This document shows, one piece after another, positions 4,316 through 52,513 of a stretch of DNA of 64,000 nt. Where the stretch lies: the sequence record MK774614.2; one strand, 5' to 3'. Below the pieces are notes generated by a model that worked only from the letters and a program-made list of their open reading frames with translations, was not told the origin of the DNA and ran no database searches. How positions within the stretch are numbered: the stretch's first letter is position 1; every line of letters begins with the position of its first letter. The translations under genes and the position numbers were made by a program.

Positions 4316-6334
4316 ATGAAGAAGATTAATCTACGCAATTGGGCTAACCTTGATTTAATCACTGTGCTCAATGACACTGAACGACGTTATAAATGCGAGG
4401 TCACAGATGACCAGGGTCAGAAAGTCATGACTGACTCGTGGCTCCTTGCACTGACGTGGTTCAGTCTTGGGGTTCACAGGGCATTTAATAAGGAACCTTA
4501 TCACATCGATGAGGTGGTGGTACTCAAAAGCGAAGAAGGACGCCAAGCATTTATTGATGATGACAAACTAAAAGGTCCGATTGATCGCTTCTTGGCACGC
4601 TTTATGCCAACTGTAGAAGATCCTGTAACGTACGATCTGATCAAACAACTGATCTTTGTATGGCACAACCAGATCCATAACTACATGTGCGTGAAATCAG
4701 AGACCGGGGTAGTATCTGCCACCTCCTTTGATATCAACCACTGCTACAAGAATCCAAAGATTGCTAGTTTACGTCAACGGGTGAAAACCCGGGAAACCAA
4801 TCTGGCCGACGCCTTGATGGAATTTGAACAGATCATGATGACCGACCCTGATTTTGATCGGTCTGTATTTGGATTGCTGTACCGCACTCGGGCAGTGTCG
4901 AGTGTCCAGTCATTTCAATTGGTCATTGCGCGAGGAGACGTGACTGACCTGAACTCTACCATTTTGCCAAACACCGTACTGGATTCTTACGGAGACGGAA
5001 TTACCAACCTGGCAGATTCCTTGGCAGACAGTAAAGGTGCGGGATTCTCTCTAATCTCTAACGGCTCTGCACTTAAAGACTCCGAATGGTTCCACAAGAA
5101 AGTCCATAACTTGGCTCAGGTTGTCCAAGGAATCAAGTATCAAACCGATTGTGGGTCTACCAAAGGGGTGAAGGTCAAAGTCATTAGTAAGGAGTTTCGC
5201 AGTTCCTTAGCGGGGAAATGGCAGATCCTGGATGACGGTTCTACTCGTTTACTTTATGGAGATGTGTTAAAGGAAATCAAGACAGGTGACTTTGTTAAGA
5301 TCCGATCCATTGCTTGGTGTAACCATGGCCGCACTGGTCGTCCTTGTTCCAAGTGTTTTGGTAAAATGGAATCGTCCGTTCCGTATAACCCCTACACTCA
5401 ACGCGGTGCAGTCCCCGGACTGTTCTACGGCTCTACCTTTGCAGAACCCATTGGTCAGTCTATTCTGAAAACCAAACACCGGATTGGGTCTGCGTCTGCT
5501 AAAGGGTATGTGGTTCATCCCCGAGACGCGGAATATATCAGAACGGATGAGGGCGGGGATTTTATCTACTTTAACGAGGAGATCTTAAATGGGACAGCGG
5601 ATCCTTATTTGATTTTGGATAAGGAAACACAACAGGACTTTTCTGATTACTCCTTTATGGAGTCATTGGATGAACTGGACGTCACCAGACTGAGAACTTA
5701 TGAGAGTATTAAACTCCGAGTTTCTGTCAGCAACCCCATGTTCCCTGAAGTGTTGGCAACCCATTATCCGATCATTGTGACGACAGTTGCGAGTCGTGAC
5801 GCGCGCATGACCAAGACCTTTGTTGAATACCTGATGAGTCAACCAATTGAAGAGGAGGGAAGAACCTACAAAATCTCGCTCAAAGGGTATGATCCACAAG
5901 AACCTGCATTTGAGCTTCCTCAGGTTAACGAGGATTTGGATGCATATCGTAAACGGGTAGAAAGTTTCTTTGCATTTAAAGAACTTCGCCACCGTTGGGA
6001 TTATACCATCACGGAGGAGATCCATGGCGAACTGATGGTGGGGCTTTGGAAAGTGGTAGATGAGAAATACAAGGGAGCGAATATTATTCTCCATGATATT
6101 TTCTTGTTCTCCTCTATGGCCAGAGACCCGGCAAACTTAAACTATGGGCTTCCCGCAGCGGGGGATGAACGGGTAATGATCTCCCTTCATGACGCGGTGA
6201 CACACCGCGGGATGTGTAACGCACTGCTCTACGGGTATCAGGGAGAATCTCTGCTCAATGATCCGTATCGCTTCTTAGTGCAAAACCGTCAAGGTGGTGG
6301 GCTGGAAGCGTTCTGTCAAACACTGGCTGACTAA
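4316..6334 (+). CDS. rpoC: Non-virion RNA polymerase beta' segment (phiKZ gp74-like)
   Basis: TDCGSTKG and IRSIAWCNH...PCSKCFG match the beta' C-terminal Zn site; AEPIGQSILKTKH resembles beta' GEPGTQLTMRTFH. Confidence 0.88.
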   Translation: MKKINLRNWANLDLITVLNDTERRYKCEVTDDQGQKVMTDSWLLALTWFSLGVHRAFNKEPYHIDEVVVLKSEEGRQAFIDDDKLKGPIDRFLARFMPTVEDPVTYDLIKQLIFVWHNQIHNYMCVKSETGVVSATSFDINHCYKNPKIASLRQRVKTRETNLADALMEFEQIMMTDPDFDRSVFGLLYRTRAVSSVQSFQLVIARGDVTDLNSTILPNTVLDSYGDGITNLADSLADSKGAGFSLISNGSALKDSEWFHKKVHNLAQVVQGIKYQTDCGSTKGVKVKVISKEFRSSLAGKWQILDDGSTRLLYGDVLKEIKTGDFVKIRSIAWCNHGRTGRPCSKCFGKMESSVPYNPYTQRGAVPGLFYGSTFAEPIGQSILKTKHRIGSASAKGYVVHPRDAEYIRTDEGGDFIYFNEEILNGTADPYLILDKETQQDFSDYSFMESLDELDVTRLRTYESIKLRVSVSNPMFPEVLATHYPIIVTTVASRDARMTKTFVEYLMSQPIEEEGRTYKISLKGYDPQEPAFELPQVNEDLDAYRKRVESFFAFKELRHRWDYTITEEIHGELMVGLWKVVDEKYKGANIILHDIFLFSSMARDPANLNYGLPAAGDERVMISLHDAVTHRGMCNALLYGYQGESLLNDPYRFLVQNRQGGGLEAFCQTLAD

Positions 6335-7005: not shown

Positions 7006-7389
7006 ATGAAAAAATTCTATTGCTTTACCGCAGGTCAACTTGTTCCTAAATGGGTTGTTGATTTTGTTTCCAAAGACCCAGAATCTGAATTTAATAACAA
7101 GAAAGCCAAGATCAGATTTATCACCAGTTGCATTGGCGTTCGGGACGGTAAGAACCAAGTTAAATTAATGCGACTTAAAAATGACAAAACTCCCGATCAT
7201 CTTCACGCTTATATTCAGATTACCAAAATGACTAACGCTGATGCAGGTGGTGTTGGAAAAGGAGCAGGGATTTCTGTTTGCGGAACCAATCACCAACACA
7301 TCTTTGGAGAAAGTAAGAAATACAACCTTTCTATTGTTAATGGAAAGGAAGTGCTTCAACAAGAAGAGTCTTCTGTTCTGCTATCGTAA
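7006..7389 (+). CDS. Hypothetical protein
   Basis: 127-aa ORF, GAGG RBS, followed by a palindrome. Confidence 0.7.
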   Translation: MKKFYCFTAGQLVPKWVVDFVSKDPESEFNNKKAKIRFITSCIGVRDGKNQVKLMRLKNDKTPDHLHAYIQITKMTNADAGGVGKGAGISVCGTNHQHIFGESKKYNLSIVNGKEVLQQEESSVLLS

Positions 7390-9126: not shown

Positions 9127-10167
9127 ATGGAAATTGACCAAAGATTGTTATTTTACAAACCCATTTCAATAATACTTGATTTTGATTGGGATACCAGTAG
9201 TTATGACGAGCGTGTTCAATTACGTCATAACTACGTCCAAGAACAAAAGAAGAAAAACCCTAACTATGTTGGTTGGGATTTCCCAGAACACTTTAGTAGT
9301 TTTTTTGGTGGTGGAAAAAATAAACACGCCGAAACGGTTGTTGATTTTTCAAGATTAGTAAGTACAACCGGACGGTTAATTTCCACCGGAAGAAAAAATC
9401 TGATTACAACTATTGGATATTCAAATGGCAAGGGTTATCTTGGATTTGACATAAAAACCAAGTCCAAAATTAAAAGATTAAAAGCGCATAGAGTAGTCGC
9501 ATGTACCTTTATCCCAATACCGGACCATTTAAATGAGTTTAAAGAAAAACTAGTAGTTAACCATAAAAACGATAATGGTTGCTGTAACTGGCAATCAAAT
9601 TTGGAATGGGTAACACAGCAAGAAAATGTAACTAAAGCTATTGAAACAGGTGCAAAAGACTCGACATATTTTAAATGCACTGTTAAGCTCCCAGGGAAAT
9701 TATTCGGAAAACAATATTACTTTTACCAAAACCCGGGGTTAAAGGCTTATGGGTTTGTTAATAGTGAAGTTTATAAATCCATTAATACCGGAAAGCTCTA
9801 TGTTCATTGTTTGTGGGAGATCGAGACTAAGCAAAATGCTGAAAATAAAACGTTGGGGATTCCCTTAGATGAACTTGCAATAATCAGAGATCCTAAAAAT
9901 GGCCGTTCCAACGCAAAAGGTGCGGTTGGAACGATAATGTCAGAAGGTCCATGCAAAGGTGAGCGGTTTGTTATTTATGGTAAAAAACAATTAAAAATGT
10001 TCGGGTTCCATGAAGGTATGGTCAGCGAATGCGTAAAAGGAAAAATTAAATACCATAGAGGATGTGTTTGGGAATACGTTTCTCGGAAAGAAGGATCTAA
10101 ATTTCAGCAGGGTTTAACCAAATCTCAAAAAGAACATATATTTCCGCAAGAGAAAAGGAATATTTGA
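9127..10167 (+). mobile_element. Free-standing HNH homing endonuclease gene with tandem C-terminal repeat domains
   Basis: AHRVVACTF...VVNHKNDNGCCNWQSNLEWVTQQEN is an HNH_3/I-HmuI-type motif; flanked by duplicated helicase end. Confidence 0.9.
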
Positions 10168-12494: not shown

Positions 12495-13532
12495 ATGTTT
12501 AATACAGGAATAGAGTACACAGCCATTAAGCCGTTATCAGAAATCTTAAATATTGATTATGATAAAACCACGGTCACAGAACGTGCTAAAATGCGTTATG
12601 ATTACATAATGTCTGAAATAGCAAAAGGAAGTGACGATGTTTTCTGGGACTACTTAGAATATATTCCAGGTGTGCTTGGAAGAAACGGTTCTAAAATACC
12701 TCCATGGAGAACTGAACAGACATTAATAAACATCTATGGTGAAGCTGGAACAAACATCAAAGGAAACTTATGGACTTATAAGGGAACCGTTGATGCAAGA
12801 GGCTATGTTAAAATTGTTGTTAGGTCACCGGCATTATCTTTTAGTATCTCAGCCCACCGTGCCGCTGCCTCTACTTTTATTCCTATGGAGACACTTGATC
12901 AAACCTTACAGGTTAATCACATTGATGCCATCAAAACAAATAATTATTTCAAGAACTTTGAATGGGTAACGCATCAAGAAAACTCCCAACATGCTGTCAG
13001 TATGGGTATTGACGTCGGTATCAACAATAAGAACACGAAACCGATCCTAGGAACGTGGATTATTCCTGATGAGGATTACGGAACAAGTTTCGTGTTAGTC
13101 GGGAAAACCGAGATCTTTGCCGCCGGGTTAAATGCACCTAGTATCCATCAAGCGGCGGATAATCCCACCATAGTCAGATATGGGTGTATTTGGAAATACG
13201 TCCCCAAGGAAGACGTCCCATTGGTACATAATGGGGTTCCAGAGACATTAACCGACAAGATAAAGGATCTTGCTTATACAAACATGAATACGGAACCTGT
13301 AAAAGCAACGATTAACGTAGAGGGGAAACATAAAGGTGAGGAATTTTGTGTTTACGGAGCCTCTAGATTAAAGGAACTTGGATTTTTAGGTCCGCATATT
13401 TTAAATGTGGTGAAAGGAAAGTTGAAAACTCATGGTGGTTGCAAGTGGATAAAGGTGTCCAGAGAAGAAGCAATGCTTTTGCAACGTGACCCAACTCCAG
13501 AACAACTCAAATTTTTATTTCCAAATAAATAA
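12495..13532 (+). mobile_element. Second free-standing HNH homing endonuclease gene, paralog of 9127
   Basis: SAHRAAASTF...QVNHIDAIKTNNYFKNFEWVTHQEN; same tandem C-terminal repeats ending GC.W..V; start could be GTG 12462. Confidence 0.88.
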
Positions 13533-16482: not shown

Positions 16483-18120
16483 ATGTCCGAACAAGAACAA
16501 CCAAACGAACAACCCATCCCAGAGTTTAAAGCAGTGCACAAAGGGGGCGGCTATAGCTCCCCTATTTTGAACACTGAAGATACCCCACTGGGCGAATACA
16601 CCACCCCGATCTTCTTGGGTTCTCTGGATAGTCAGCACAAAGCAATCTTTGAAACTGCGGTGGTCTTTGCCGAACTGCGCCAGATGCGCCAGGACAATGA
16701 AGCGGAGCGCGGTGTCTCTACACAGATGCTAAACTCGCTGGAAGTCAAATACAGCGAACTGTGCGAAAAACATTTCCCGGGAATTGATGAAAAAGAACTG
16801 GCGATTACACTTGCCAATTACTTTAACTTTATTCAACGCGGTGAACGTACACTTCGTCGTGACGAGAACCGGGATCTGCTTAACGCTGAGCGATTCAGTA
16901 ATGTCTTTGATCGTCCTGCTGGTCCCGCAGGCGTTATTGAAAAGACCGCGGTTAAAACAGTTAAAGATAAAGGCATTCGTGACCGGATGCGGCGCAGTGT
17001 CCTTAAAGCGATGGGTGCGAGCGATAGTATCACGATCACACTCCCTAACTCCCGCATTGTGCTACGCATTCCTGTTCCTACTCCGTGGGAGATGGCGTCG
17101 CTCTTTAACAAGATCTCCGCTGCACTTAACTACAACCAGTTTGGTGGTCGGATTCGGGTGTCTAGCCTCCATCTAGAACGCGCCATGATTACTCGCACCA
17201 TTGTAATGTGGGTGTTGGAACGTGCCAACTACTGGTCTGTTAAAGACATCTTGGAAGCACAAGAACTCCTTGAAGTGATTCAACGCGAAGATGCCGATCT
17301 GATTGCAACAGCTATCTTAGCAAGTGCCGCACCAAAAGGTCTGTCGTATCGTCTCCATTGCCTTGCAGATAAATGTAACTACGTAGAAGACAAACTGATT
17401 GATCCTGCCAACTTGGTGGTCTTCGATGACATTCGTTATCCACAAGTCTACATGGATCAACTGCTGGAAATGTTGAACACCGGTAAGAAGTTCACCAAGC
17501 AGGAACTCAAAGATACCCGTGTTCCTTATGTGGATGTAAACGGTGAGGTGCTGGATGATAAGATCATTGCAGTGGGTGGTGAAATCGAGTTTAAAATTGG
17601 CAGTCCTTATTTGTCCGATTACTTTACTTGTTTTGATCATGCCGCCAATCTCTTAAATAAAGAGATCCGTGATCTGGCTACTCAGTTCCCTAACGCGAAG
17701 GAGTTTGCCGAAAAGCGCAAAGAACTGATGTCCAGTATGCGGATGATCGATTACCTTCAGTATTTTGAATCGATGACTCTCAAAGCGGATCCGCTTAATG
17801 AAGAAGAGAAAGACGAAGTTATTTCTCGTTCAGAAAACCCGGGTGAATTTAACCAAGGTCTGATCGATATCTTTAATAACGATGAAGTCCTCTACGGTGA
17901 AGCATTGGTTAAAGTTCTGACCATTGTCCCCCGGATGTCTTATACCTTCGTTGGGATTGCTGATGACACTTGCCCTAAGTGCAAAGAAAAACATCCCCAT
18001 ACTGAAATCCGTAATGGGTTTACACCAATCGATCCTATCCTGAATTTTTTCGACCAGGCCCGGATGTTGATTATGGTACGGCGGGACATGGGAGTTTATC
18101 AAGAGGAAGTTCTTTCCTAA
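16483..18120 (+). CDS. Putative tail/baseplate assembly chaperone-like protein (candidate 'G')
   Basis: 545-aa ORF; C-terminal CPKC and PIDPILNFF followed by a slippery T6 run; function inferred. Confidence 0.5.
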   Translation: MSEQEQPNEQPIPEFKAVHKGGGYSSPILNTEDTPLGEYTTPIFLGSLDSQHKAIFETAVVFAELRQMRQDNEAERGVSTQMLNSLEVKYSELCEKHFPGIDEKELAITLANYFNFIQRGERTLRRDENRDLLNAERFSNVFDRPAGPAGVIEKTAVKTVKDKGIRDRMRRSVLKAMGASDSITITLPNSRIVLRIPVPTPWEMASLFNKISAALNYNQFGGRIRVSSLHLERAMITRTIVMWVLERANYWSVKDILEAQELLEVIQREDADLIATAILASAAPKGLSYRLHCLADKCNYVEDKLIDPANLVVFDDIRYPQVYMDQLLEMLNTGKKFTKQELKDTRVPYVDVNGEVLDDKIIAVGGEIEFKIGSPYLSDYFTCFDHAANLLNKEIRDLATQFPNAKEFAEKRKELMSSMRMIDYLQYFESMTLKADPLNEEEKDEVISRSENPGEFNQGLIDIFNNDEVLYGEALVKVLTIVPRMSYTFVGIADDTCPKCKEKHPHTEIRNGFTPIDPILNFFDQARMLIMVRRDMGVYQEEVLS

Positions 18121-19117: not shown

Positions 19118-19149
19118 CATTCTTTACCCACTGGTGTGGGTAAAGAATG
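19118..19149. terminator. 14-bp-stem hairpin
   Basis: CATTCTTTACCCAC-TGGT-GTGGGTAAAGAATG. Confidence 0.55.
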
Positions 19150-19164
19150 TTTTGCTACAATAGC

Positions 19165-19271
19165 TACTTTTATAAAACAAGGGAAATAACATGAATGTGA
19201 ATATTGATCAAATGGATCATGTTTTTGACACCATTGATGGGTTTGAATCTATTAGTAATAAAGATTTTAAA
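19165..19271 (+). repeat. 107-bp leader cassette, copy 1
   Basis: 26 nt of identical upstream sequence plus 27 codons; repeated at 21583-21689. Confidence 0.95.
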
Positions 19272-20195
19272 ACAGTAAATGCGAAATACACCCAGACTGT
19301 CCTTCGGCTCAATGGGTGTGATTTAGCGGTAATTGCAGGTCAGGAAGGTTTGGGAACTGCTATTAAGGAAGGTGCTAAGAAAGTACTGGACATGCTCTTG
19401 AATCTGATCAAGGCGGTTAAAGATTTCTTCTTTGGTAGTAAAGGCAAGAACAAAGAAGTTCAGATGCGGGAAGCCAGTAAACAAGCAAAACAAGTTTTGG
19501 TAGAAGTAAAGAAAGCACCTGCCCTGGAAGAGAAGGTTGCTAAAAACGCAGAAAAACTTCAACCCAGCATGACCAAGATCGCTAAAGCTGCAACACACGA
19601 AAAGATTGAATTGGTCTTTGGCCCTTACGTTAATTTCATGTCAGAGTACTTCGAGACAATGGCGGATGCAAAAACAGAAGGCTACCTTGTTGCCGCGCAA
19701 ACTGGCAAAGCGTCACTAAATAAATGGCGAACTGATAACTTGAAACTGCTGGCGGCCTTTAATACCCTGGCTAAATCATTTACCCATCGTTACAAAGATG
19801 AAGAAACAAAAGAAGTTGAAGCCTTCGCTGTAATTGAAAGTATCGAGACGGGTAATAAAGTTATTGCTGGAACCGAAGCGTTCCGGGATGTCGCAAAAGA
19901 CGGTCTTAAAAGTGTTAATGAAACACTTGAAGGTTACACCGCGTATTATGAAAGTTTGATTAAAGAAGGAGATAAAGCTGGGAACGCTGAGCAAGTATTG
20001 AAGTTTATTCAGTCACTTGGCAAAGTAGATACCAAAATGGCTAAACTCGTCAGTGAGTGCGATGAGTTTATTATTACTATAGCTGCCGCCATTGCTCGCC
20101 TGGGTACTCCTATTCTGGAAACAGAACCACAACTGAATAAAGTATTGAGTAATATTACCAGTACTGAACAGTTAGACGATTTCATGAACAGTTAA
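19191..20195 (+). CDS. Internal head protein paralog (phiKZ gp93-family-like)
   Basis: DGFES and AGQEG maturation-type motifs followed by an amphipathic helix ending KDFFFG. Confidence 0.7.
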   Translation: MNVNIDQMDHVFDTIDGFESISNKDFKTVNAKYTQTVLRLNGCDLAVIAGQEGLGTAIKEGAKKVLDMLLNLIKAVKDFFFGSKGKNKEVQMREASKQAKQVLVEVKKAPALEEKVAKNAEKLQPSMTKIAKAATHEKIELVFGPYVNFMSEYFETMADAKTEGYLVAAQTGKASLNKWRTDNLKLLAAFNTLAKSFTHRYKDEETKEVEAFAVIESIETGNKVIAGTEAFRDVAKDGLKSVNETLEGYTAYYESLIKEGDKAGNAEQVLKFIQSLGKVDTKMAKLVSECDEFIITIAAAIARLGTPILETEPQLNKVLSNITSTEQLDDFMNS

Positions 20196-20204
20196 CTTTG
20201 TAAA

Positions 20205-20238
20205 AGAGCCACCTAACCCAATTGGGTTAGGTGGCTCT
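20205..20238. terminator. Perfect 34-bp palindrome
   Basis: AGAGCCACCTAACCCAATTGGGTTAGGTGGCTCT. Confidence 0.65.
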
Positions 20239-20262
20239 AAAACATGTTGCCTATAATTTTTG

Positions 20263-20283
20263 AAACAGATATTATTATAATGT
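20263..20283 (+). promoter_or_regulatory. Putative early promoter
   Basis: AAACAGATATTATTATAATGT. Confidence 0.6.
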
Positions 20284-20316
20284 TAAACAACCTAATGTTT
20301 ATTTAAAGGAGTGGTT

Positions 20317-20895
20317 ATGAATTGCGAAACAAAAGAGATGTTTATTCGTTTTGCTAACGGCGCTTTCACAGAGTGTAAAGCAATCCCCGCTGGGGTGTTG
20401 TTGGTTTGGGATAAAAATATTAATCCGTTAGAAGTATCGGGCGTATCATCAAAAGAATCGGAAGAACGATTCAGTCATTTTGCTCGCGTTGACGTTCATG
20501 GAAAACGTAAATCCAAACTGGGCGTTTTTACCTCTGATACTCAAGATAAGAACTACCTTGTTATTGCTCCAATACAGTTTTTTAAGGTTGCCTTAGATAT
20601 GTTGGACCCGACGTTAGACCCCAAAACCTTGTGGAATAACGAAACGCCATCTGATGGTTTTAGCACGCTGTTTGACGCACTCAGTTACGTTCGAGAGAAC
20701 TTTACTCCAACTGGCAAAATCGGCGGCAAAGAAGATCCCGAACCCGCGGAACCTGTTGTAATCAAATCTTGGTCGCTGCACAAAGAGAATTACACCAATC
20801 AAGAAGTGCAAGAGATCCTCAGTGAGTTTAAAGAAGAACTGGTTGAAACCACCAATCAGTTAATGAACCGCCTTATTAACAGACTTAGCAAATAA
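20317..20895 (+). CDS. Hypothetical early protein
   Basis: ATG 20317 after AAGGAG; downstream of the early motif. Confidence 0.75.
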   Translation: MNCETKEMFIRFANGAFTECKAIPAGVLLVWDKNINPLEVSGVSSKESEERFSHFARVDVHGKRKSKLGVFTSDTQDKNYLVIAPIQFFKVALDMLDPTLDPKTLWNNETPSDGFSTLFDALSYVRENFTPTGKIGGKEDPEPAEPVVIKSWSLHKENYTNQEVQEILSEFKEELVETTNQLMNRLINRLSK

Positions 20896-20910
20896 CATTG
20901 GAGAATAAAA

Positions 20911-21504
20911 ATGCGTATTGTATCGATTGCAATTGTTGATAAAGACATTTATCTTGGCACCGTTTATTGCGAAGATAAGTACATTGACAAAGTCCTACTT
21001 ATGTTCCCCGGATTTACAAAATTGGGGACTGATTATAATCCGAATAAAAAGGATTACGGCGTCACGTACCTTCATCTTAAACAGTTTGATTTTCCGGCTA
21101 TTTATGGTTACGCCCATAAGCACGAAAATGAGTCTCTCAATAAACTGGTCTTTGAACACGCAGAAGACATCACCGTCAGAGTTTGCGGACTTGGGATGCT
21201 CGCCTGTTTTGAACAGATCAAACAAGAACAGTTCCTGTCTCTCCCTGATCCACACAAACAAGAACAAGAGGACGAAGCAAACATGGACCTGGAACAGAAA
21301 TATCAAGCTAATAATTCGTGTAACTCGTCACCTTCGCTTAAAACCTTCCTGGAACTCTCCGAAACGATGGATGGTGTTGGACTAACCCTTACCCCTGAGC
21401 AAGAGAACAAATTGCTTCACGATGCGATTAACGAGCTTCAAGAAGAGATCCGTTCTTTGAACAATCAGCTGGCTAAGAAAAACCAATACGACCTCGACGC
21501 ATAA
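20911..21504 (+). CDS. Hypothetical early protein with C-terminal coiled coil
   Basis: 197-aa ORF, GGAG RBS. Confidence 0.75.
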   Translation: MRIVSIAIVDKDIYLGTVYCEDKYIDKVLLMFPGFTKLGTDYNPNKKDYGVTYLHLKQFDFPAIYGYAHKHENESLNKLVFEHAEDITVRVCGLGMLACFEQIKQEQFLSLPDPHKQEQEDEANMDLEQKYQANNSCNSSPSLKTFLELSETMDGVGLTLTPEQENKLLHDAINELQEEIRSLNNQLAKKNQYDLDA

Positions 21505-21509
21505 TAACA

Positions 21510-21542
21510 AGGTCCCATTTCCCAGTCTGGGAAATGGGACCT
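21510..21542. terminator. 15-bp-stem hairpin
   Basis: AGGTCCCATTTCCCA-GTC-TGGGAAATGGGACCT. Confidence 0.65.
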
Positions 21543-21582
21543 GTAACTATTTTTTATTTGTGTAATCCTTTGCTATATTGTT

Positions 21583-21689
21583 TACTTTTATAAAACAAGG
21601 GAAATAACATGAATGTAAATATTGATCAAATGGATCATGTTTTTGACACCATTGACGGCTTTGAGTCGATTAGTAATAAAGATTTTAAA
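21583..21689 (+). repeat. 107-bp leader cassette, copy 2
   Basis: Differs from copy 1 at 5 synonymous third positions only. Confidence 0.95.
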
Positions 21690-22616
21690 TCCCCTAATAG
21701 TGTTTATGCACAAACCGTACTGAAACTCAATGGTGCTGATTTGGGCGTCATCTCAGGTCAAGAAGGGTTTGGAACTGCTGTTAAGGCGGGGGCTAAGAAA
21801 GTTTACGAAATGATCATGAATTTCTTACGCGCAGTTAAGGAATTCTTCTTTGGTACCCGCTCTGGTAAAAGTGACGCCAGTCTTTCAAAAGTGATTGCCC
21901 AAATTCCCAGATCAACGTTTGTAATCAAGGCCGCTCCAAATCATAAACTAGAAAAGCTATTGGAAGAAGCAAACGCGTCCAATGCAAAACTGGAAAGCAT
22001 TCTTTCTGGGAGATACGGGAGTGTGCGTTTTGCAAGCTACGATGAGTTCTTGGATGTGATGACTGAGAACACACAAGCCTCCCTCAGAAAACTTGATCTG
22101 ACTGGGCTTTCTATCACTAACCTTGGTGATACCGAAGGTTACAAAACAGACAAACTTCGGGAAGAGCTTGAAAAACTGATCAAAATGATCGCGAATCACG
22201 AAAGTGGGAAAGGACAGGATGGTTCCATAATTGCTCTTTTCAAGGCAGTCGAAGACGGGCAAGCCATGGCAAACACCCTCGGTTCTGTTCGAACCGAAGC
22301 AAAGAAATTGATTGTCACCATGACCGCAGATCTTGAAATCGCTACTCAAGCTTTGAATCGCAATAAGCAGTTTGTTGACAAAGATGAAAACCTCACCAAA
22401 CAACATGAACGTCTCGAAGCTTACACCATTCAGCTTGGTAAATCCATGGCTAAACTCGTCAAACTCAGCAAAGATTGTGAGAACTATATTTTAAACATTG
22501 CAGATGTTTGTGTCAAAATGGAAGCGAAGGTTTCTGGCAATGATAGTAACGGTAAACAAATTCTTGCCGAATTTGATAAACTTATGTTAGACGATGGTGA
22601 CGTAAGCTTTAAGTAA
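21609..22616 (+). CDS. Internal head protein paralog (phiKZ gp93-family-like)
   Basis: First 27 aa identical to the 19191 protein; SGQEG motif then helix ending KEFFFG. Confidence 0.7.
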   Translation: MNVNIDQMDHVFDTIDGFESISNKDFKSPNSVYAQTVLKLNGADLGVISGQEGFGTAVKAGAKKVYEMIMNFLRAVKEFFFGTRSGKSDASLSKVIAQIPRSTFVIKAAPNHKLEKLLEEANASNAKLESILSGRYGSVRFASYDEFLDVMTENTQASLRKLDLTGLSITNLGDTEGYKTDKLREELEKLIKMIANHESGKGQDGSIIALFKAVEDGQAMANTLGSVRTEAKKLIVTMTADLEIATQALNRNKQFVDKDENLTKQHERLEAYTIQLGKSMAKLVKLSKDCENYILNIADVCVKMEAKVSGNDSNGKQILAEFDKLMLDDGDVSFK

Positions 22617-22624
22617 ATAATATA

Positions 22625-22658
22625 AACTCTACTTACTCCGTTTGGAGTAAGTAGAGTT
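22625..22658. terminator. 15-bp-stem hairpin between convergent genes
   Basis: AACTCTACTTACTCC-GTTT-GGAGTAAGTAGAGTT. Confidence 0.7.
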
Positions 22659-22672
22659 CTTAAATAGTATTA

Positions 22673-24391
22673 TTAATTTTGGCTTTGAACAAACGGTTTA
22701 ACAGTGTTAGAATAGAAGTCATTGATTTCCACCAAAGACGGCATTCCGTAAATGGTAGAGCACAAGGTATTCGCGTTAGCAACGGGACTACTTGCGTAGT
22801 TCACCCCCAGTCTGCGATACTCGATTCTATCCAACCCTTCTATTTTACAAACCTCCAACTTCGTTGTTTTGTTTGAAACATTAAGAGACACCGTAACGCT
22901 GGGGTAGGCGGAGCTCACATCTATGTCGTCAGTATATCCATGTGCTTTTGAACGCCAGTGAGAAAGCCCTTCATAGAGGATCTTTCCATTTTCTTCGTTC
23001 ATCTCTGCGTGAAGCAACGCAATCCAATCTCGAAGATCAGGTTTTAGTTCCTTTAAGGGATCTTCTTTTCGTCTTCCCACTGTTCCCCACACATACCCAT
23101 TCTTCAATGCAATAAACGACAACATATCAGAAATCATGGAAGGTTGGGATTGGTACGATTTGAGCTCAGATGACGTCAACAAAGACGGCAGTGACATAGA
23201 GTAGTCATTCGTCGCTCGGTTAAGGTCTTCAATGACCCAGTTATCCTGAATGTTGTACATGGCGTACAAATACGGTTCATTTTCCAACATCCACTTGTGC
23301 CATTCCGCAGAACCTTCTTGCAGATGACTCCCAACATCCGTGTAAAGCTTTGAGAGCACTTTCTCATGTTGGGCAGTAGCATTTAACGCATACGACTCTC
23401 GCTTGCCCTGAGGGGCTCTTTTAATCGCATAAAACGACATTCCATCAAACCACTGCCATTTAGCGGGAGCTTGAACAACAGGAAACCGTTCATGATTATC
23501 AAGAGGTGTTCTAGAGCCGTCTACTTTGGTTTTAAATTCCCGCCCGGGGAAATAAAGGTAATCCTGGTAACCTTGGGGAGTCTTTGGGTCAGAATAAACT
23601 TGATCTAACTTATAACCTTCGTTTAACAGTTCCCGTTGGTTGGCCTGCATATCAAAGTTAGCATTCCAGGAAACAACATAATCAGGCCCGAGTTCATGCC
23701 AGAACTGAATGTTGTTATAAACGACTTTGCCGGGGGTATCTTCTAATTGGAAATGGATTTCAACATTGTGAAGGTCCATGTACTCTTTGAGGTATTTTTG
23801 GGCATACTCATTGAGTTTTTGTAAGATGACGTGATCTTGTTCGCCTTTAAAAATTGCTCTGAGTCCTGACCAGTAGACACGGTTCTTACTGGTCGTAGAC
23901 GCCATACAAACAGGACCCACACTGCCATCAGGAAGAATATACGTTTCTACGTCATATGCGGCAACCGTATAAGACTCTTGCGGTTGGTATTGTGGGTACT
24001 TGTCATAGAACTTTTGTTTAAAGACGACAGGGAGTGTTTCTTGACATCCAAATACATACGGATTGTTTTTGATCTCTTGGATTTGTGCTTTTCGATCAGG
24101 TCTACCAAAGAGGACTTTAGAAATGTTCATGGCAAGTCTTGCTTCATTAGAAGAGAACTTGTCACACTTGTTTAATTCAATGTAATCGCGAGAGTCTTGG
24201 AAATTACGGTGTTGTTTCTTAACAATGTAAAAATCCCGTTTATAGTTTTCCAAAAAGACCAATTGATCTTCTCGAGAGTCATCATCGTAAATGTTTGTAA
24301 TCTTCGCGGTAAGCAGGTCATTATCACTTAAGTGTTTGTGATAAGAGAGATAGGCGTGCTTACAAACACGCCCAACCAGTTTCTTTTCCAT
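22673..24391 (-). CDS. Split family-B DNA polymerase, N-terminal part (3'-5' exonuclease plus motif A; phiKZ gp82-like)
   Basis: ExoI YDVET, ExoII WNANFD, ExoIII YNIQD, PolB motif A DVSSAYPS; ends shortly after motif A. Confidence 0.85.
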   Translation of the reverse strand: MEKKLVGRVCKHAYLSYHKHLSDNDLLTAKITNIYDDDSREDQLVFLENYKRDFYIVKKQHRNFQDSRDYIELNKCDKFSSNEARLAMNISKVLFGRPDRKAQIQEIKNNPYVFGCQETLPVVFKQKFYDKYPQYQPQESYTVAAYDVETYILPDGSVGPVCMASTTSKNRVYWSGLRAIFKGEQDHVILQKLNEYAQKYLKEYMDLHNVEIHFQLEDTPGKVVYNNIQFWHELGPDYVVSWNANFDMQANQRELLNEGYKLDQVYSDPKTPQGYQDYLYFPGREFKTKVDGSRTPLDNHERFPVVQAPAKWQWFDGMSFYAIKRAPQGKRESYALNATAQHEKVLSKLYTDVGSHLQEGSAEWHKWMLENEPYLYAMYNIQDNWVIEDLNRATNDYSMSLPSLLTSSELKSYQSQPSMISDMLSFIALKNGYVWGTVGRRKEDPLKELKPDLRDWIALLHAEMNEENGKILYEGLSHWRSKAHGYTDDIDVSSAYPSVTVSLNVSNKTTKLEVCKIEGLDRIEYRRLGVNYASSPVANANTLCSTIYGMPSLVEINDFYSNTVKPFVQSQN

Positions 24392-37387: not shown

Positions 37388-38551
37388 ATGTACGATAACA
37401 TTTTCGCCGCTGTAACTGGTGCTGAATCCGCTGATCTGGACGCTCAAGTTGAAGTTACCGCAGAAGCCGTTGCTGAAGCCGTGGTTGACAAAGAGCTGGC
37501 TGAAGTCGAAGTCGAGCTGGTTGAACACGAGAAAGACATCGAAGAAGCCGAGCACGCGATCGAAGTGCTGGAAGAGAAAGTAGAAGAGCTGCAAGAAGAA
37601 GTAGGCGGCATGGAATCTATGCTCTCTGGCGCTACCGAATTCAACGCTGCTCTGTTCCATGACAAGTTCCGTCGTGCTTCCAAGATCGCTGCGCGTTTCG
37701 GCGCCAACGTAGAGATCCAAGGTGCTGAAAGCTTTGCCGATGCTTCTACCGCTTCCATGAACTCTCTGGCCGGCATCGAAAGCTTCAAAGAGCGTGCTGG
37801 TAAAGCCAAAGAAGCGATCAAGAAGTTCTTCGTTGATCTGTACAACAGCTTCATCGCTTTCTTCCAAGGTCTGTTCAACAAGTTCAAGGGCATTGAGCAA
37901 AAAGCCAAAACCCTGGGTAACAAGTCTGGCGATGCCAAAGAGAAGGTTAACCTTCCTGCTGCTGCTTCTTGGCTGGGCGCTAACGGTCAGATCGCTCCTG
38001 CCGGTGCTGTATCCAAAGTGGTTGCCGCTGGCGAGACCGCAGTGAAAGCTGCCGGTAAAGAAGGTGCACTGTCTGGTATCCAAGCCGGTGTGAAAGCACT
38101 GAAAGAACTGGGTACTGCTACTCAGACCTCTTCTACCGAAGACACCGAGACCTTCAAGGTTGCTGTAGGCGATGGTAGCTTCACCGTTGTTTATCCGAAG
38201 ACTGTTGCTGGTCTGGGTAAAGTCCAAGTTTCCGGTATGAACGGTGGCGAAGCCAAGAAAGATCAAGACGGTCTGAAGAAAGCCCAACTGGGTACCATCA
38301 TCAGCTCTGTTCAGACTCAGGCTAAGTCCCTGCAGTTCGCTAAGCTGGATAGCAAGGCACTGACTGCTCAGCGTGATCAGACCATCGCTACCCTGGCTCG
38401 CATGGCTGCTGAAGACAAGGCTGACGTCTCTGAAGACATCGGTGCTATCAAAGCTGCTGCTAAAGCTGCTCTGAAGCTGCAAAAAGGTGCCCTGGCTGTT
38501 GCTGGTGATCTGCTGCAAGCTCAACTGGCTTTCGTTAGCGCTCACTTCTAA
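37388..38551 (+). CDS. Abundant internal head protein paralog with acidic propeptide
   Basis: TGAES, GGMES, QGAES, AGIES motifs; E-rich N-terminus; strong codon bias. Confidence 0.8.
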   Translation: MYDNIFAAVTGAESADLDAQVEVTAEAVAEAVVDKELAEVEVELVEHEKDIEEAEHAIEVLEEKVEELQEEVGGMESMLSGATEFNAALFHDKFRRASKIAARFGANVEIQGAESFADASTASMNSLAGIESFKERAGKAKEAIKKFFVDLYNSFIAFFQGLFNKFKGIEQKAKTLGNKSGDAKEKVNLPAAASWLGANGQIAPAGAVSKVVAAGETAVKAAGKEGALSGIQAGVKALKELGTATQTSSTEDTETFKVAVGDGSFTVVYPKTVAGLGKVQVSGMNGGEAKKDQDGLKKAQLGTIISSVQTQAKSLQFAKLDSKALTAQRDQTIATLARMAAEDKADVSEDIGAIKAAAKAALKLQKGALAVAGDLLQAQLAFVSAHF

Positions 38552-38586
38552 GTAGCGTTTAGCGATCAAATAGCTAACTTAAATTG

Positions 38587-38618
38587 AGGAGAGAAGGGGC
38601 TTCGGCTCCTTCTCTCCT
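38587..38618 (+). terminator. Intrinsic terminator with cUUCGg loop
   Basis: AGGAGAGAAGGGGC-TTCG-GCTCCTTCTCTCCT followed by TT. Confidence 0.8.
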
Positions 38619-38647
38619 TTGCCGTCTTCTGTTATTTTTTATTCTGG

Positions 38648-38658
38648 AATGCTATGAC
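38648..38658 (+). promoter_or_regulatory. Putative late promoter
   Basis: AATGCTATGAC, 17 nt upstream of the next ATG. Confidence 0.5.
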
Positions 38659-38675
38659 TTCTTAAGGAGAACAGC

Positions 38676-39761
38676 ATGTCTATAGAACTTATGCCTAAAA
38701 AAGGAACTGGAAACAGTACCGATGGGATTTATGCAAAAGTAGTGGAACCGATCGAAGAAAGTTTGGATTTCTTTGTTGGTAAAGAGATTAAAGTAAAGAA
38801 AGAAGACGAAGTCGATGGATTTGAATCTTTCTCAGGTCAAGGACAAGTTGCCAGTGATCTGGTAATGAGTTTTGCCCTCGCTCGTCCTACATTGACCCAA
38901 ACTACGTTGGAAATTGATGGAACAGAAAGCTTTGGTGAAAAGGCCAAGTCTGTTTTACGTACATTGGTTCAATTAGCTAAAGATGCCGTTGCTTGGTTAA
39001 TGAGTTTGATCAATAACAAAATTGTTCGTATCGATAATCGGCGATATCGGTTATCCTCTCGGCGTAAACGCCACGGTCTTCATACCAAGGATGTTAAATA
39101 CCCATCCGTGGTAAGACGGCTAATGGCCCCTAATCGAGTCACTGAAGATGGTCAGTGGATCAAAGAGTCTATTGAAGCGGTTAATGATTTTTACATCACT
39201 GCTATGAGTGTGTATAAACAACTGCTTGATCGGATTAAAATTGAACCCAGTACGTTTGATTATTCTCGTGCCATTGATGGTGTCAATAAGCTGTTTGTGT
39301 CTACGTTTAAAATGAGTGCTAATAAAACCGAAGATGACGGGGTTGTGACATTCAATTCCCAAGTGCTTCCCGGTAATCGGTATTTCATCTATAAAGCGTC
39401 GACACCTAGTCGTATTGTTAATGGTGCTATGTACTTTGATAACACCACCATGGAAGTGAAACTCAAAGCCCAAGAGTTTCGTCCCACAAGTTTCACCATT
39501 GACGCTACACTCACGTCGATCGCCAATCTTATTAATACGGTACGGGATAACCAAAAGACGGTGGGAGAACTTCACAGACGCTTTGAAAAGGCAGTGGTTG
39601 CTTTTGTTAACAAAGAAGACGTTAGACTCTCTCCAGAACAACGCACCTATCTGGATTGGTTGATTTCATTGAGCAAGAACCTTAATGCTAAATCCATTAA
39701 CTATGTCACCTCTTCAGTAGACGCCGGTTTAGACTTTTGTCAAGCGGGGATTAATGAATGA
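38676..39761 (+). CDS. Internal head protein paralog
   Basis: DGFES and DGTES motifs then amphipathic helix; VLPGNRY. Confidence 0.7.
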   Translation: MSIELMPKKGTGNSTDGIYAKVVEPIEESLDFFVGKEIKVKKEDEVDGFESFSGQGQVASDLVMSFALARPTLTQTTLEIDGTESFGEKAKSVLRTLVQLAKDAVAWLMSLINNKIVRIDNRRYRLSSRRKRHGLHTKDVKYPSVVRRLMAPNRVTEDGQWIKESIEAVNDFYITAMSVYKQLLDRIKIEPSTFDYSRAIDGVNKLFVSTFKMSANKTEDDGVVTFNSQVLPGNRYFIYKASTPSRIVNGAMYFDNTTMEVKLKAQEFRPTSFTIDATLTSIANLINTVRDNQKTVGELHRRFEKAVVAFVNKEDVRLSPEQRTYLDWLISLSKNLNAKSINYVTSSVDAGLDFCQAGINE

Positions 39762-40288: not shown

Positions 40289-40860
40289 TGAATCAAGATA
40301 AATACCTTTCCCTGAAACAGGGATTGTGTATGTACAACGCAATGGTGCTTAAACACGCCATTGATATTAATGGTCAAGCAGTTGATATAAAACAATTGGC
40401 AGAAAGCCTGATCCAACAGTTAAACAACATCCAGCAAGATTTCAGTATTCCGATCACCCTATTAGAACGATCTATCTGTATTGGTGGGACTGTTGCACTT
40501 GCCGATCACCTAAGGGTCATTTTTCATAAAGTAGAACATGAAACACGTTGCACTTACGGTGTCCAGAAACTACGGGAATTGATTTACGAAAGACCTGTGT
40601 TCGATGATGCGGTAAAACTAATCGAAGAACAACTTCTTTTAGATAAGGAACACATGTTCACCAATCCCAAACAGATCGTGGGTAAAATCATTGAACTGGT
40701 GGAAGAGATATTTGAACGGCTTAAAGCCAGTATCCGGGTGAGCAGTGTTGGTGATCCAAGCGCACTGATCGTAAATTTGTTATTGGTAATTGAACTGGTC
40801 AATGTTCTTCATGTTACCGATTGGTATTTTGATTACGCAAATGGCAACTGGGGTAAATGA
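40285..40860 (+). CDS. Hypothetical protein
   Basis: 191-aa ORF translationally coupled. Confidence 0.65.
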   Translation: MMNQDKYLSLKQGLCMYNAMVLKHAIDINGQAVDIKQLAESLIQQLNNIQQDFSIPITLLERSICIGGTVALADHLRVIFHKVEHETRCTYGVQKLRELIYERPVFDDAVKLIEEQLLLDKEHMFTNPKQIVGKIIELVEEIFERLKASIRVSSVGDPSALIVNLLLVIELVNVLHVTDWYFDYANGNWGK

Positions 40861-41759
40861 AAATGATGGTTGAAACAAACATTTTGGATGACGGGTTAAC
40901 TAACCCCGACTTGGTAGAAGTTGCCTGCGAGGTCCCTGTATCGGATGTTGACGATCAGGTTGACCACATGGTCGCTGTCCTTGATGGTTACGGGTCTATG
41001 TTGACCAAAGAAGAAATTGAATACGCCTCGTTAACAGGTAACGAAGCCTACGCGTACAGTGTTCTTCAACTCCATGGGTTCAGTGGCTCGGAGAGCTGGG
41101 TCGACACCATGAAGCAATCTGCTGAAACCGCATATAAGGCGATCATCGAGACGCTTCGTGCTATCAAAGAGTTTTTCTTTGGGGACGGTAAAAAGGCGGT
41201 CGAGGAAGCTGACAAGAAAGCAGTGGAATCTCTGGAGTCCTTGGCCAAGCTTGATATGAATGCACCCATCAAAGAAGAAAGTAAACTGACTAACCCGTTG
41301 ACTTACTTTAAGAATCCGGGTGAAAGTGTGGAGTTAGAAAATCTTTACGCTAAATACCCAGCCGTTAAAGAAGCCCTGGAAAAAGTGCAAGGTGCAACGT
41401 CTCGTATTGCTAATGCCAAAGCAGTAGGTCAACTGGGCGCTGTTTATCAAGAGATGCGCAAGAAAGCATCAGAAGCCTCTGGGGCGATTACAAAGGCATT
41501 GGAAAGTGCACTTAAGTCGGCAGAAGACGCCGCCAACGAAATGAAAGCCGGACCTAAAGCCCAAGAGGACGCAACCAATGAAATCAAGCAGGCAGCTAAG
41601 GAACAGCAGAAAGAGAACGTGGATACTGCTAAAGAAGAAACCCGTTACTCAAAAGCCCTTGGTAGTTTGCGCAATAAAATAACCACCATGCTCAATGCGA
41701 TTTCCAATAACGCCAATTCCGTTAAAGGGGAAACAAAAGAATCTGAATTTAAGGGGTAA
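40857..41759 (+). CDS. Internal head protein paralog, same subfamily as 19191/21609
   Basis: DQVDHMVAVLDGY...SGSES...RAIKEFFFG aligns with DQMDHVFDTIDGF...GQEG...KAVKDFFFG. Confidence 0.7.
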   Translation: MKMMVETNILDDGLTNPDLVEVACEVPVSDVDDQVDHMVAVLDGYGSMLTKEEIEYASLTGNEAYAYSVLQLHGFSGSESWVDTMKQSAETAYKAIIETLRAIKEFFFGDGKKAVEEADKKAVESLESLAKLDMNAPIKEESKLTNPLTYFKNPGESVELENLYAKYPAVKEALEKVQGATSRIANAKAVGQLGAVYQEMRKKASEASGAITKALESALKSAEDAANEMKAGPKAQEDATNEIKQAAKEQQKENVDTAKEETRYSKALGSLRNKITTMLNAISNNANSVKGETKESEFKG

Positions 41760-50341: not shown

Positions 50342-52513
50342 ATGTCCAGTAAATTTTCCGTTAAAGGTTCCGGTCGTCAAGGCGCTGGCCTGAAAGCGAT
50401 CATGAGCAACCTGAACGACATCAAATTTGATCAAGAGAACATCTGGGGTGGTATCGCCGGTAACGAATCCCTGCAACCTGAACAGCGTGCTGACAAGTTT
50501 AACTCTGTCCGTATGTCTGGCGCTGCTGCTGCTGTTGAATCCGTAAAAGACGCCAAGTTCGGTCAGCGTGCTCAAGCGCTGGGTGATTTCATGAAAGCCT
50601 CTGGTATGGAATCTTTCTCCCAGCAAATGGATGCCGGTTCCCTGGCTCGTCAGAAAGCTGCCACCATCGATCTGAACACCCGTTCTAACCGCCAGTGGGA
50701 AGGTCCTGAAGCTCTGTACCCGACCGTGATCATTCCGTATGCTCAAGAAACCATGCTGCTGCCGGTTGACGTTGCGGGTGTTGGTGCATACAACATGTCC
50801 GGTAACGTGAACGAGTCTTTCGAAGATCTGCGTCCGATCGCTGCTGTTCTGGCCGACTCCAAGTTCAATCCGGGTGATGACCTGAAACTGGTTCCGGTAT
50901 ATCCGGCTGATGCTGCTAACCCGAACAACGAAGCCTTCGTTGATCCGAGCTGGTGGACTCCGTGGGATCATTCCTATGGTGACAACGATCTGCTGGGTCG
51001 TGAAGCCCATAAGACCAACTACCTGGCCATCCGCAAAGCCAACAACCTGATGAGCCTGTGTCAAGCTCCGGGTGCTGAGCGTTTCGAGCAGAACGATGAA
51101 ATCGAGTCCAACTCCATTGCGCTGGATTCTATCCTGTTCTCCTTCAAAACCAAAGATCAAACCACCACTGGCTACTTTGCGCTGGATACCTCTACCATGT
51201 CTGGTCGCAGTATGCGTCCGAGCAATGGCCTGACCTCTGATGAGAAGCGTCAAATCCAATTCCCGGTTAACGGCATCGATGTCGCTAACTTCAAAGACAA
51301 GCTGGGTGCTTCTACCGGTGCATTCAAATCTCTGACTGATGCAGGTCTGAAAGTCTATCTGCAGTTTGAGTTCTCTGCTACCTACCATCGCTCTACCCGT
51401 GCTTGGGCTCCGGCTGTTGGTCCTGTTTCCATCGCTTATGTCATGAAAGATGGCGTGAAGATGGTTCCGGGTACACCGTCCATGCCAGCCGATATTGCCG
51501 CGCTGGTGAAAGCACAAGTTGTTGAAGCTGAGATCGTTGGTATTCTGGCGTCTCTGAACCACAACAACGTTAACCGTAGCCGTTACGGCACCGTGGTTGT
51601 TTACGCATCTTCCGTTAAGCCGTATGGCGTTAACAAGCGTAACCCGATCTCTGTGAAGTACCCGATGCAAGACGATGACAACAACGCTGATGTACTGGCT
51701 ATGCTGGTTAAGCAGATGGATGTCATGGTTACTCGCAACATGTCTCATGATGCGTTCAAAGCAGCCGGTCAACACTTCGCACGTCTGTACGACAACAACG
51801 GCTCCAAGATCGTTAACATCAACGATGATTCTGCCTCTATCATGCCGGGTCAGCACTTCCTGACCACCACCGCTGTAGACAGCAAGATCAACCTGGTGAA
51901 AGAAGTCTCCACTCTGGACTCCAAAGACACCCGTGACAACATCGAAGCGGCTCTGGTTAACAAGATCTATGACATCATCACCGCTCTGCGCGTGAACTCT
52001 AACATCGCTGCTCTGAAAGAGCTGGATGGTCGTAAAGAAGAGTATGTGATCGTAGCTCACGCTTCCCTGGCTCCGTTCCTGATGACCACTGGTGACTACC
52101 GTACCTTCGGTGAGAACGTGAAGTTCAAGGTTGTTGAAACCAACATCGATAGCGAAATTGGTCGTATGTGGGTTGTTCCGGCTTCTCAGACCACTGATAC
52201 CGAAATCGATATCTTCGGTGGTATGGGTGTTTGTGTTGCCAAGGAACTGCTGGTGATCGAAGGTCAAGTTGCTCAAGCTGATCGTCAATACCGCATGGTC
52301 ATCTCTCAGCCGTCCTATGCTCACCACAGCCTGTGCCCGGTTGCCGGTCGTCTGGTTGTTGAAGACATGGATCTGCTGCTGGGTGATGAAGGTCTGATCA
52401 CCTCTGTCAACAAACACCTCATCGCTGGTAACTTTACCGCTGATGTGTCTGGTGGTCAACCTGGTACCGATGACAAGGTTGAAGTCGAACTGGCTCCTAA
52501 CCCTGCTCCGTAA
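50342..52513 (+). CDS. Major capsid protein (phiKZ gp120-like)
   Basis: 723 aa; EALYPTVIIP motif; AGNES/SGMES propeptide motifs; strong codon bias; between DnaB and nvRNAP beta N-half. Confidence 0.9.
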   Translation: MSSKFSVKGSGRQGAGLKAIMSNLNDIKFDQENIWGGIAGNESLQPEQRADKFNSVRMSGAAAAVESVKDAKFGQRAQALGDFMKASGMESFSQQMDAGSLARQKAATIDLNTRSNRQWEGPEALYPTVIIPYAQETMLLPVDVAGVGAYNMSGNVNESFEDLRPIAAVLADSKFNPGDDLKLVPVYPADAANPNNEAFVDPSWWTPWDHSYGDNDLLGREAHKTNYLAIRKANNLMSLCQAPGAERFEQNDEIESNSIALDSILFSFKTKDQTTTGYFALDTSTMSGRSMRPSNGLTSDEKRQIQFPVNGIDVANFKDKLGASTGAFKSLTDAGLKVYLQFEFSATYHRSTRAWAPAVGPVSIAYVMKDGVKMVPGTPSMPADIAALVKAQVVEAEIVGILASLNHNNVNRSRYGTVVVYASSVKPYGVNKRNPISVKYPMQDDDNNADVLAMLVKQMDVMVTRNMSHDAFKAAGQHFARLYDNNGSKIVNINDDSASIMPGQHFLTTTAVDSKINLVKEVSTLDSKDTRDNIEAALVNKIYDIITALRVNSNIAALKELDGRKEEYVIVAHASLAPFLMTTGDYRTFGENVKFKVVETNIDSEIGRMWVVPASQTTDTEIDIFGGMGVCVAKELLVIEGQVAQADRQYRMVISQPSYAHHSLCPVAGRLVVEDMDLLLGDEGLITSVNKHLIAGNFTADVSGGQPGTDDKVEVELAPNPAP

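Follow-up and report, generated by a model that had tools for sequence, protein, structure and literature searches.

Paralogous putative internal head proteins of Aeromonas phage CF8 share a conserved leader and an apparent gene-conversion tract

Introduction

Internal head proteins of the PF12699 (phiKZ_IP) family have been described in several giant phages. In phiKZ, PF12699 paralogs are proteolysed and mostly injected with the DNA (bioRxiv 10.1101/2024.03.24.586471, 10.1101/2022.09.17.508391); the inner-body paralogs are cut after Glu by the S80 protease gp175, and several of them are injected (bioRxiv 10.1101/2024.03.24.586471; PMC11297242). Phage SPN3US encodes gp53 and gp54 (pfam12699), which are identical in their first 15 residues and 34% identical overall, are abundant ejection proteins present at more than 600 copies each, and have their propeptides (125 and 137 residues) removed in several A-x-E cuts by the prohead protease. 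Mature gp53 starts with Gly followed by an aromatic residue, and the conserved N-termini were likened by the authors to the targeting sequences of T4 (PMC5694885, PMC10052503). In T4, internal proteins IPI-III and Alt carry a short conserved N-terminal signal that is removed by the prohead protease after Glu, and the proteins are then injected (PMC5694885). Six paralogs of phage Goslar, gp53-gp58, are present in virions at approximately 50 to 2150 copies, and their role has been called an unsolved mystery (bioRxiv 10.64898/2026.04.21.720040). Here, we describe a comparable group of genes in Aeromonas phage CF8: CF8_0087 and CF8_0090 (genes A and B), which begin with a nearly identical 107-bp cassette and encode a conserved N-terminal leader, and their more distant relative CF8_0107 (gene C). 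All three lie within a 64,000-nucleotide stretch of sequence record MK774614.2, referred to as the window.

CF8 is a phiKZ-like jumbo phage of the genus Chaoshanvirus with a 238 kb genome, and groups with phages ZPAH34 and AerS_266, the latter of which encodes chimallin, PhuZ and two multisubunit RNA polymerases and has been classed as phiKZ-like (PMC10673249). Coordinates are those of the window, and correspond to positions in the CF8 record minus 62000. Genes A (19191..20195), B (21609..22616) and C (40857..41759) are all on the plus strand, code for proteins of 334, 335 and 300 aa, and are annotated as hypothetical; none of the genes studied is broken.

We consider it moderately probable that A, B and, more distantly, C are all-helical paralogs belonging to a leader-defined branch of the PF12699 superfamily, that they are internal proteins processed in the prohead, and that the 107-bp identity of A and B arose by conversion. 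The leader is recognised by two motifs that are nearly invariant in a large family of proteins, the remainder of A and B adopts one predicted fold, and the nucleotide pattern at the start of the two genes differs sharply from that of the flanking sequence.

Results

A leader with two conserved motifs defines a large family

A leader profile built from ten close relatives retrieves at least 282 clusters (at the 50% identity level; E <= 1e-3) from chimallivirus-type phages, most of which have a length of 220-370 residues and carry the leader N-terminally. Among 150 representatives, G50 and E52 are present in all 150, G17 and Y33 in 147 each, H10 in 141 and E19 in 124, and no [S/A/G]-x-E motif other than those ending at E19 and E52 is widely conserved in the family. 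In A these motifs are G17-F-E19 (19239..19247, plus strand), a predicted first protease site, and G50-Q-E52 (19338..19346, plus strand), at which maturation cleavage is predicted to fall after E52; the counterparts in B are at 21657-21665 and 21756-21764, also on the plus strand. Gene C, noticed in the initial annotation as a third relative at 40857, is a real yet distant member (phmmer E 2e-10 to 6e-8) with about 27 additional N-terminal residues, and has G77-S-E79 (41085-41093) at the invariant site.

The leader is internal in representative P0148, PHROG 27616 and a RisingSun protein of 475 aa, with about 200 residues ahead of it, and is thus not always N-terminal.

The bodies of A and B are diverged copies with one predicted fold

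The initial annotation described A and B as similar to about residue 80 and almost completely divergent thereafter, and interpreted them as a modular tag joined to swappable effector domains. The fall in identity is evident, with successive 30-residue segments containing 28, 20 and 14 amino-acid identities and then 2-9, and identity of approximately 20% past the shared stretch. The C-terminal parts are, however, still collinear and homologous. BLASTP aligns A and B with an E-value of 4e-49 and 35% identity over 309 residues, and an hhalign comparison of the A and B ortholog alignments without the leader (the C-terminal 250 residues) gives a probability of 97.8% and an E-value of 7.5e-13 over 230 columns, at 19% identity. 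AlphaFold2 models, run with a 150-sequence alignment, are all-helical for both A (pLDDT 84.4, pTM 0.82) and B (pLDDT 83.1, pTM 0.81), and have an identical succession of helices and two small hairpins; the B model matches a public prediction of A with a TM score of 0.69 (E 3e-15), rather than the two bodies having differing domains. Both the leader and the body are under purifying selection among orthologs (dN/dS 0.05-0.17, and 0.08-0.17 for the body alone), and the body of A gathers more amino-acid change than its leader. Judged from these alignments and models, the two bodies have diverged from one helical protein and are not foreign modules.

Across the family, the numbers bear out a constant N-terminal part followed by a variable remainder. 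BLAST matches the leaders to each other in 10436 of 11175 pairs (93%) and the parts after residue 82 in 473 of 11175 (4%), the latter forming 37 BLAST groups, whereas the remainder of A and B is a diverged homolog. This disparity between leaders and C-terminal parts, together with the several copies often found in one genome (as many as 7 places in Kosakonia phage Kc263), would favour a portable tag for packaging, joined to mutually unrelated, swappable effector domains injected against host defences; moreover, host pressure on ejected proteins is plausible, given that those of the inner body co-localise with the Juk sensor (bioRxiv 10.1101/2022.09.17.508391). We nonetheless regard such an arrangement as very unlikely at this locus, where the two bodies are homologous and share a predicted fold under purifying selection. 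A Pfam scan of A, B, C and the 150 relatives gives only isolated weak helical matches and no enzyme, toxin or other effector domain (0/150 relatives), and searches of the PDB find no relative of A and B, the best sequence match having an E-value of 0.075 and the best fold match an E-value of 0.1 with TM <= 0.25. The occurrence of two length classes is also easier to reconcile with one scaffold diverging slowly than with shuffled domains.

A wider proposal, which seems to us quite unlikely, is that the leader marks a large injected repertoire extending over all of these clusters in chimallivirus-type phages. Fast body diversification would then occur because host sensors of the Juk type select for change in the ejected proteins, with conversion homogenising the leader module and terminator-flanked cassettes moving between places.

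Links to the phiKZ internal head proteins

The connection to PF12699, which has a gathering cut-off of 27 bits, runs through the relatives. Fifty-four of the 150 match this family at E <= 1e-3 (best 9e-9), and one of them, P0062, scores 29.7 bits through residues 1-102 alone, which align with model positions 34-137; because P0062 exceeds the cut-off through its first 102 residues, the leader corresponds to the front of the PF12699 model. The window also contains two true phiKZ_IP genes, CF8_0103 and CF8_0104 (37388..39761, plus strand), recognised with both PF12699 and PHROG. CF8_0104 scores 31.5 bits on PF12699, all six of the CF8_0103 and CF8_0104 proteins and their orthologs in three phages match it at E <= 0.01 (best E 5.4e-39), and the PHROG 'internal head protein' match in this region has an E-value of 6e-72. 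These proteins have two invariant G-x-E motifs located 34 residues apart, and the spacing in A and B is 33. At the level of fold, the all-helical models match 'internal head protein' and 201phi2-1 virion proteins weakly (E 0.007-0.1, TM 0.25-0.42).

Similar features can be discerned in phiKZ itself, where a marginal match aligns leader residues 54-81 with a helix of gp93 (residues 158-186) that is directly preceded by S-L-E at 154-156; in gp95 and gp96 an S-T-E motif lies ahead of the equivalent helix, which is likewise marginal and a lead only. Gene order is in agreement, as the cluster with gene C and the A orthologs is syntenic with phiKZ gp89-97, and the region around gene C with phiKZ gp87-gp123. 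The start of gene C overlaps the stop of the upstream gene, and gene C is therefore probably co-transcribed with the head cluster. The major head protein gene is also in the window, at 50342-52513.

CF8 has a gene for a prohead protease of the Peptidase_S80 family, annotated as hypothetical and located far outside the window at record positions 230730-231578. Its product is 83% identical to the AerS_266 enzyme, which matches Peptidase_S80 with an E-value of 1.5e-66 and also matches the phiKZ protease. Together, the near-invariant G-x-E sites, the PF12699 matches of the relatives, the S80 gene and the cluster context uphold the initial annotation where it relates these proteins to the internal head proteins of phiKZ and reads the leader as resembling a targeting and processing region. 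We suggest that CF8_0087, CF8_0090 and CF8_0107 be relabelled as 'putative internal head protein, phiKZ_IP-related'.

A 107-bp tract shared by genes A and B

The two cassette copies, at 19165..19271 and 21583..21689 on the plus strand and 2.4 kb apart, each consist of 26 nt of 5′ untranslated sequence with a ribosome-binding site followed by codons 1-27 of A or B. As first described, the 26 upstream bases are all identical, and so are 76 of the 81 coding bases (102/107 altogether), with five synonymous and no non-synonymous differences. The mismatches are at +9, +48, +51, +57 and +60. The edges of the tract are sharp: upstream of -26 identity drops to 12 of 22 bases, and mismatches become dense beginning at +82. 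The 26-nt string is found exactly twice in the window (19165-19190 and 21583-21608), where the chance expectation is 0.

CF8 and ZPAH34 are merely 68-80% identical over the A and B genes, and a metagenomic relative of CF8 that has the same gene order, with an A′ gene 85% identical to A, provides a closer comparison. In the 26 upstream nucleotides, the paralogs are identical at 26/26 positions in CF8 and at 18/26 in the relative, and orthologs of the two phages at 17-20/26. From +1 to +81 the paralogs are identical at 76/81 positions in each of the two genomes and the orthologs at 71-72/81, whereas from +82 to +249 the paralogs agree at 118/168 positions in CF8 and 121/168 in the relative, and the orthologs at 129-144/168. 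Paralogs therefore exceed orthologs in likeness over the first 81 nt, and the order is reversed after +82.

Alternatively, the identity could be maintained by selection, with the tract acting in both genes as a regulatory or RNA element (for instance a promoter, an RNA structure or a translation-initiation region). The tract does include the ribosome-binding site and start codon, and two short upstream motifs are common to A and B in CF8 and its relative, as well as to ZPAH34 B. The upstream counts in the relative show, however, that strict conservation of the 26 nt is not required. RNA folding of the common 5′ region from four genes gives z-scores of -0.4 to +0.7 and thus no signal of RNA structure, an Rfam scan of the window gives no match, the 26-mer is absent elsewhere in the window, and the short upstream motif common to A and B is not enriched within it. 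We give this explanation little credence. The reversal between paralogs and orthologs, the sharp edges and the lack of RNA structure point instead to gene conversion, and at the level of sequence comparison a recent conversion tract between A and B accounts best for the 107-bp near-identity in CF8; conversion has probably been recurrent, beyond the recent event in CF8.

Genes for HNH_3 endonucleases recur near leader-family genes. Two are in the window (9127-10167 and 12495-13532), and others are found in other stretches analysed (L012, 2463-2918; L004, 8598-9665; L009, 3366-4418). Those outside the window are OBP_088, directly 5′ of the leader-family gene OBP_089, one gene 3′ of the tandem leader-gene pair in phage AhC3_1 and one 3′ of the B′ gene in the metagenomic relative of CF8, with none at that spot in CF8 itself. 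These genes might promote local recombination near leader-family genes.

Location and surroundings of genes A and B

Genes A and B in CF8 are surrounded by replication and transcription genes, and each forms a separate unit with hairpins on either side. A terminator-like hairpin with a 14-bp stem followed by a T-run (19118..19149, plus strand) divides A from CF8_0086, and a palindromic terminator hairpin, identified from an alignment, lies 3′ of A (20206..20237, plus strand). Gene B is preceded by a hairpin with a 15-bp stem (21510..21542), which has a counterpart 5′ of B in ZPAH34, and a hairpin with a 16-bp stem (22624..22659) separates B from the convergent DNA polymerase gene. A scan for sigma-70 promoters is uninformative for phages of the CF8 type.

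The initial annotation placed A and B outside the main head operon, which is correct for CF8 and does not extend to its sister phages. In ZPAH34 and AerS_266 the A ortholog (58-61% identity) is located within the head cluster, between the orthologs of CF8_0103 and CF8_0104, and is bordered by two near-identical hairpins (5879-6000 and 7009-7086 of stretch L002). The corresponding gap between CF8_0103 and CF8_0104 is 124 bp (38552-38675) and holds one hairpin. At the sequence level, the single hairpin as opposed to the flanking pair suggests gene gain or loss through recombination between terminator repeats. In the outgroup AhC3_1 two copies lie in tandem at the locus of the CF8 type, so that the CF8 arrangement may be the older one. 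Gene B stays beside the DNA polymerase gene in both arrangements.

Between A and B are CF8_0088 and CF8_0089 (20317..21504, plus strand), two genes for which Pfam and PHROG scans gave no match; their orthologs in ZPAH34 are upstream of B. Three independent metagenome contigs, L006 (11005-11044), L007 and L008, end 39 nt past gene A, within the perfect palindrome of its terminator, and because the break falls inside a perfect palindrome this is an assembly artefact and not a genome end. The DNA polymerase is split into two genes approximately 30 kb apart, at 22673-24391 (minus strand) and 53802-55499 (plus strand), with PHROG matches to 'DNA polymerase' and 'polymerase'; split polymerases are known in OBP- and SPN3US-type phages (PMC5694885). 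The ZPAH34 ortholog of CF8_0084 (16483-18120) bears the annotation 'putative ZipA-like cell division protein', and here the gene matches only a PHROG of unknown function (E 7e-75).

Discussion

By analogy with their relatives, we infer that the A and B proteins are located in the virion, cleaved, and ejected. The N-terminal region would bring the protein into the prohead, where the Peptidase_S80 protease would cut after E19 and E52 at the G-x-E motifs; published cleavage motifs include A-x-E in SPN3US (PMC5694885, PMC10052503) and S-x-E in phiKZ (gp93 E13), with Glu at P1. Residues 1-52 would then be a propeptide and residues 53-82 the first conserved helix of the mature protein, so that the similarity extending to about residue 80 spans two parts. 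The body of approximately 280 residues, beginning at G53 with the conserved amphipathic helix, would stay in the DNA-filled head as an internal and probably ejected protein. The leader may be held constant because it must fit conserved partners, for example the protease, the shell or the core, with the less constrained body free to drift.

A refinement of this explanation, which does not exclude it, is that the leader or its 20-52 piece is retained as a stabilising strip under the capsid shell, in the manner of phiKZ gp93 residues 14-84, and that cleavage frees the body; conservation of the leader would then reflect its fit to the major capsid protein, which is itself conserved and encoded within the window. 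In the phiKZ cryo-EM structure, N-terminal fragments of gp93 and gp162 bridge hexamers and have their ends at protease sites, with cleavage separating helix-rich domains (PMC11297242). In A and B, however, just 33 residues lie between the two conserved sites, as opposed to about 70 in gp93, comparison with gp93 finds no sequence similarity over its residues 14-84 (the helix at 158-186 is the sole part to which the leader profile aligns), and the leader is helical in the models and not an extended arm. We therefore view a retained strip as unlikely, albeit with some weight.

Several points count against A and B being prohead-processed members of the PF12699 superfamily. Neither A (16.2 bits) nor B (15.7 bits) reaches the PF12699 cut-off and C is without a match; hhalign against the local true phiKZ_IP proteins is weak, with 20.6% probability over the leader only. 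That comparison does align motif to motif, with G50-Q-E52 of A placed on the G-x-E of CF8_0104 in a weak profile match. The leader profile matches phiKZ gp93 and gp96 only marginally, and the models place the leader with high confidence within the folded protein, unlike a floppy tag. Gly at P3 is accepted by the phiKZ-type protease, as Thomas et al. (2012) reportedly found; the published sites in SPN3US and phiKZ gp93 have Ala and Ser there. As to conversion, the excess of within-genome similarity in codons 1-27 rests on few sites, which limits confidence in it. Lastly, in CF8 the A and B genes stand alone, away from the head cluster, and virion proteomics was found for none of CF8, ZPAH34 and AerS_266, including in the papers on the latter two; a literature search for N1M2 proteomics gave nothing useful.

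The separate position of A and B among replication and transcription genes and the lack of proteomic data for the CF8 clade would also suit proteins that are not part of the virion, with a conserved N-terminal domain acting inside the cell during infection. This is highly improbable in our view, because A orthologs lie inside the internal-head-protein cluster, the relatives OBP_089 and N1M2_207 carry the annotation 'putative virion structural protein' (and no other), and weak yet repeated matches to internal head protein families are obtained. We thus retain the view of A and B as putative prohead-processed internal proteins.

The role of the abundant injected PF12699 proteins is an unsolved question for chimalliviruses in recent work, and the CF8 locus does not answer it. 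What the locus provides is a leader signature with two fixed G-x-E sites that retrieves hundreds of relatives missed by Pfam, and a precise predicted mature N-terminus at G53. The leader has apparently been homogenised between paralogs by conversion, and the genes are terminator-bounded cassettes found at differing loci in sister phages.

The pattern of paralogs with a conserved N-terminus is already published for related giant phages, and the additional detail here is the motif invariance, the conversion and the relocation of the cassette. The closest parallel is SPN3US gp53 and gp54, compared here by their published description. In both pairs the paralogs are similar in length, are identical at the N-terminus (over 15 residues in SPN3US, 27/27 in CF8) and have an overall identity of about 34-35%. 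The SPN3US proteins have N-terminal propeptides with several x-E sites for an S80-type protease, and a mature protein starting with Gly and an aromatic residue followed by a helix; the same is predicted for A and B. The SPN3US pair differs in that the propeptides are 125-137 residues, as opposed to a predicted 52 in A and B, P3 is Ala and not Gly, and gp53 and gp54 reach the Pfam threshold; nucleotide-level conversion and relocation, seen for CF8 A and B, are not described for SPN3US. The phiKZ proteins gp92-97, gp162 and gp163 (PF12699) resemble A and B as helix-rich paralogs from a syntenic head cluster with [S/G]-x-E before the same amphipathic helix, but are 371-816 aa long with longer N-terminal regions, have marginal similarity to A and B, and are encoded in the cluster, outside which CF8 A and B lie. 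Among Goslar gp53-gp58, as in the CF8 group, Pfam recognises only some of the paralogs and the rest share the predicted fold (bioRxiv 10.64898/2026.04.21.720040), although the phage search gave no Goslar sequence match to A and B, and a shared leader is not reported. The T4 internal proteins resemble A and B in logic only: the IPI-III and Alt families are absent among the Pfam and PHROG matches of A and B and the Pfam matches of their relatives, the T4 signal is 10-20 residues long, and the T4 proteins are small and mutually unrelated, whereas A and B share one fold.

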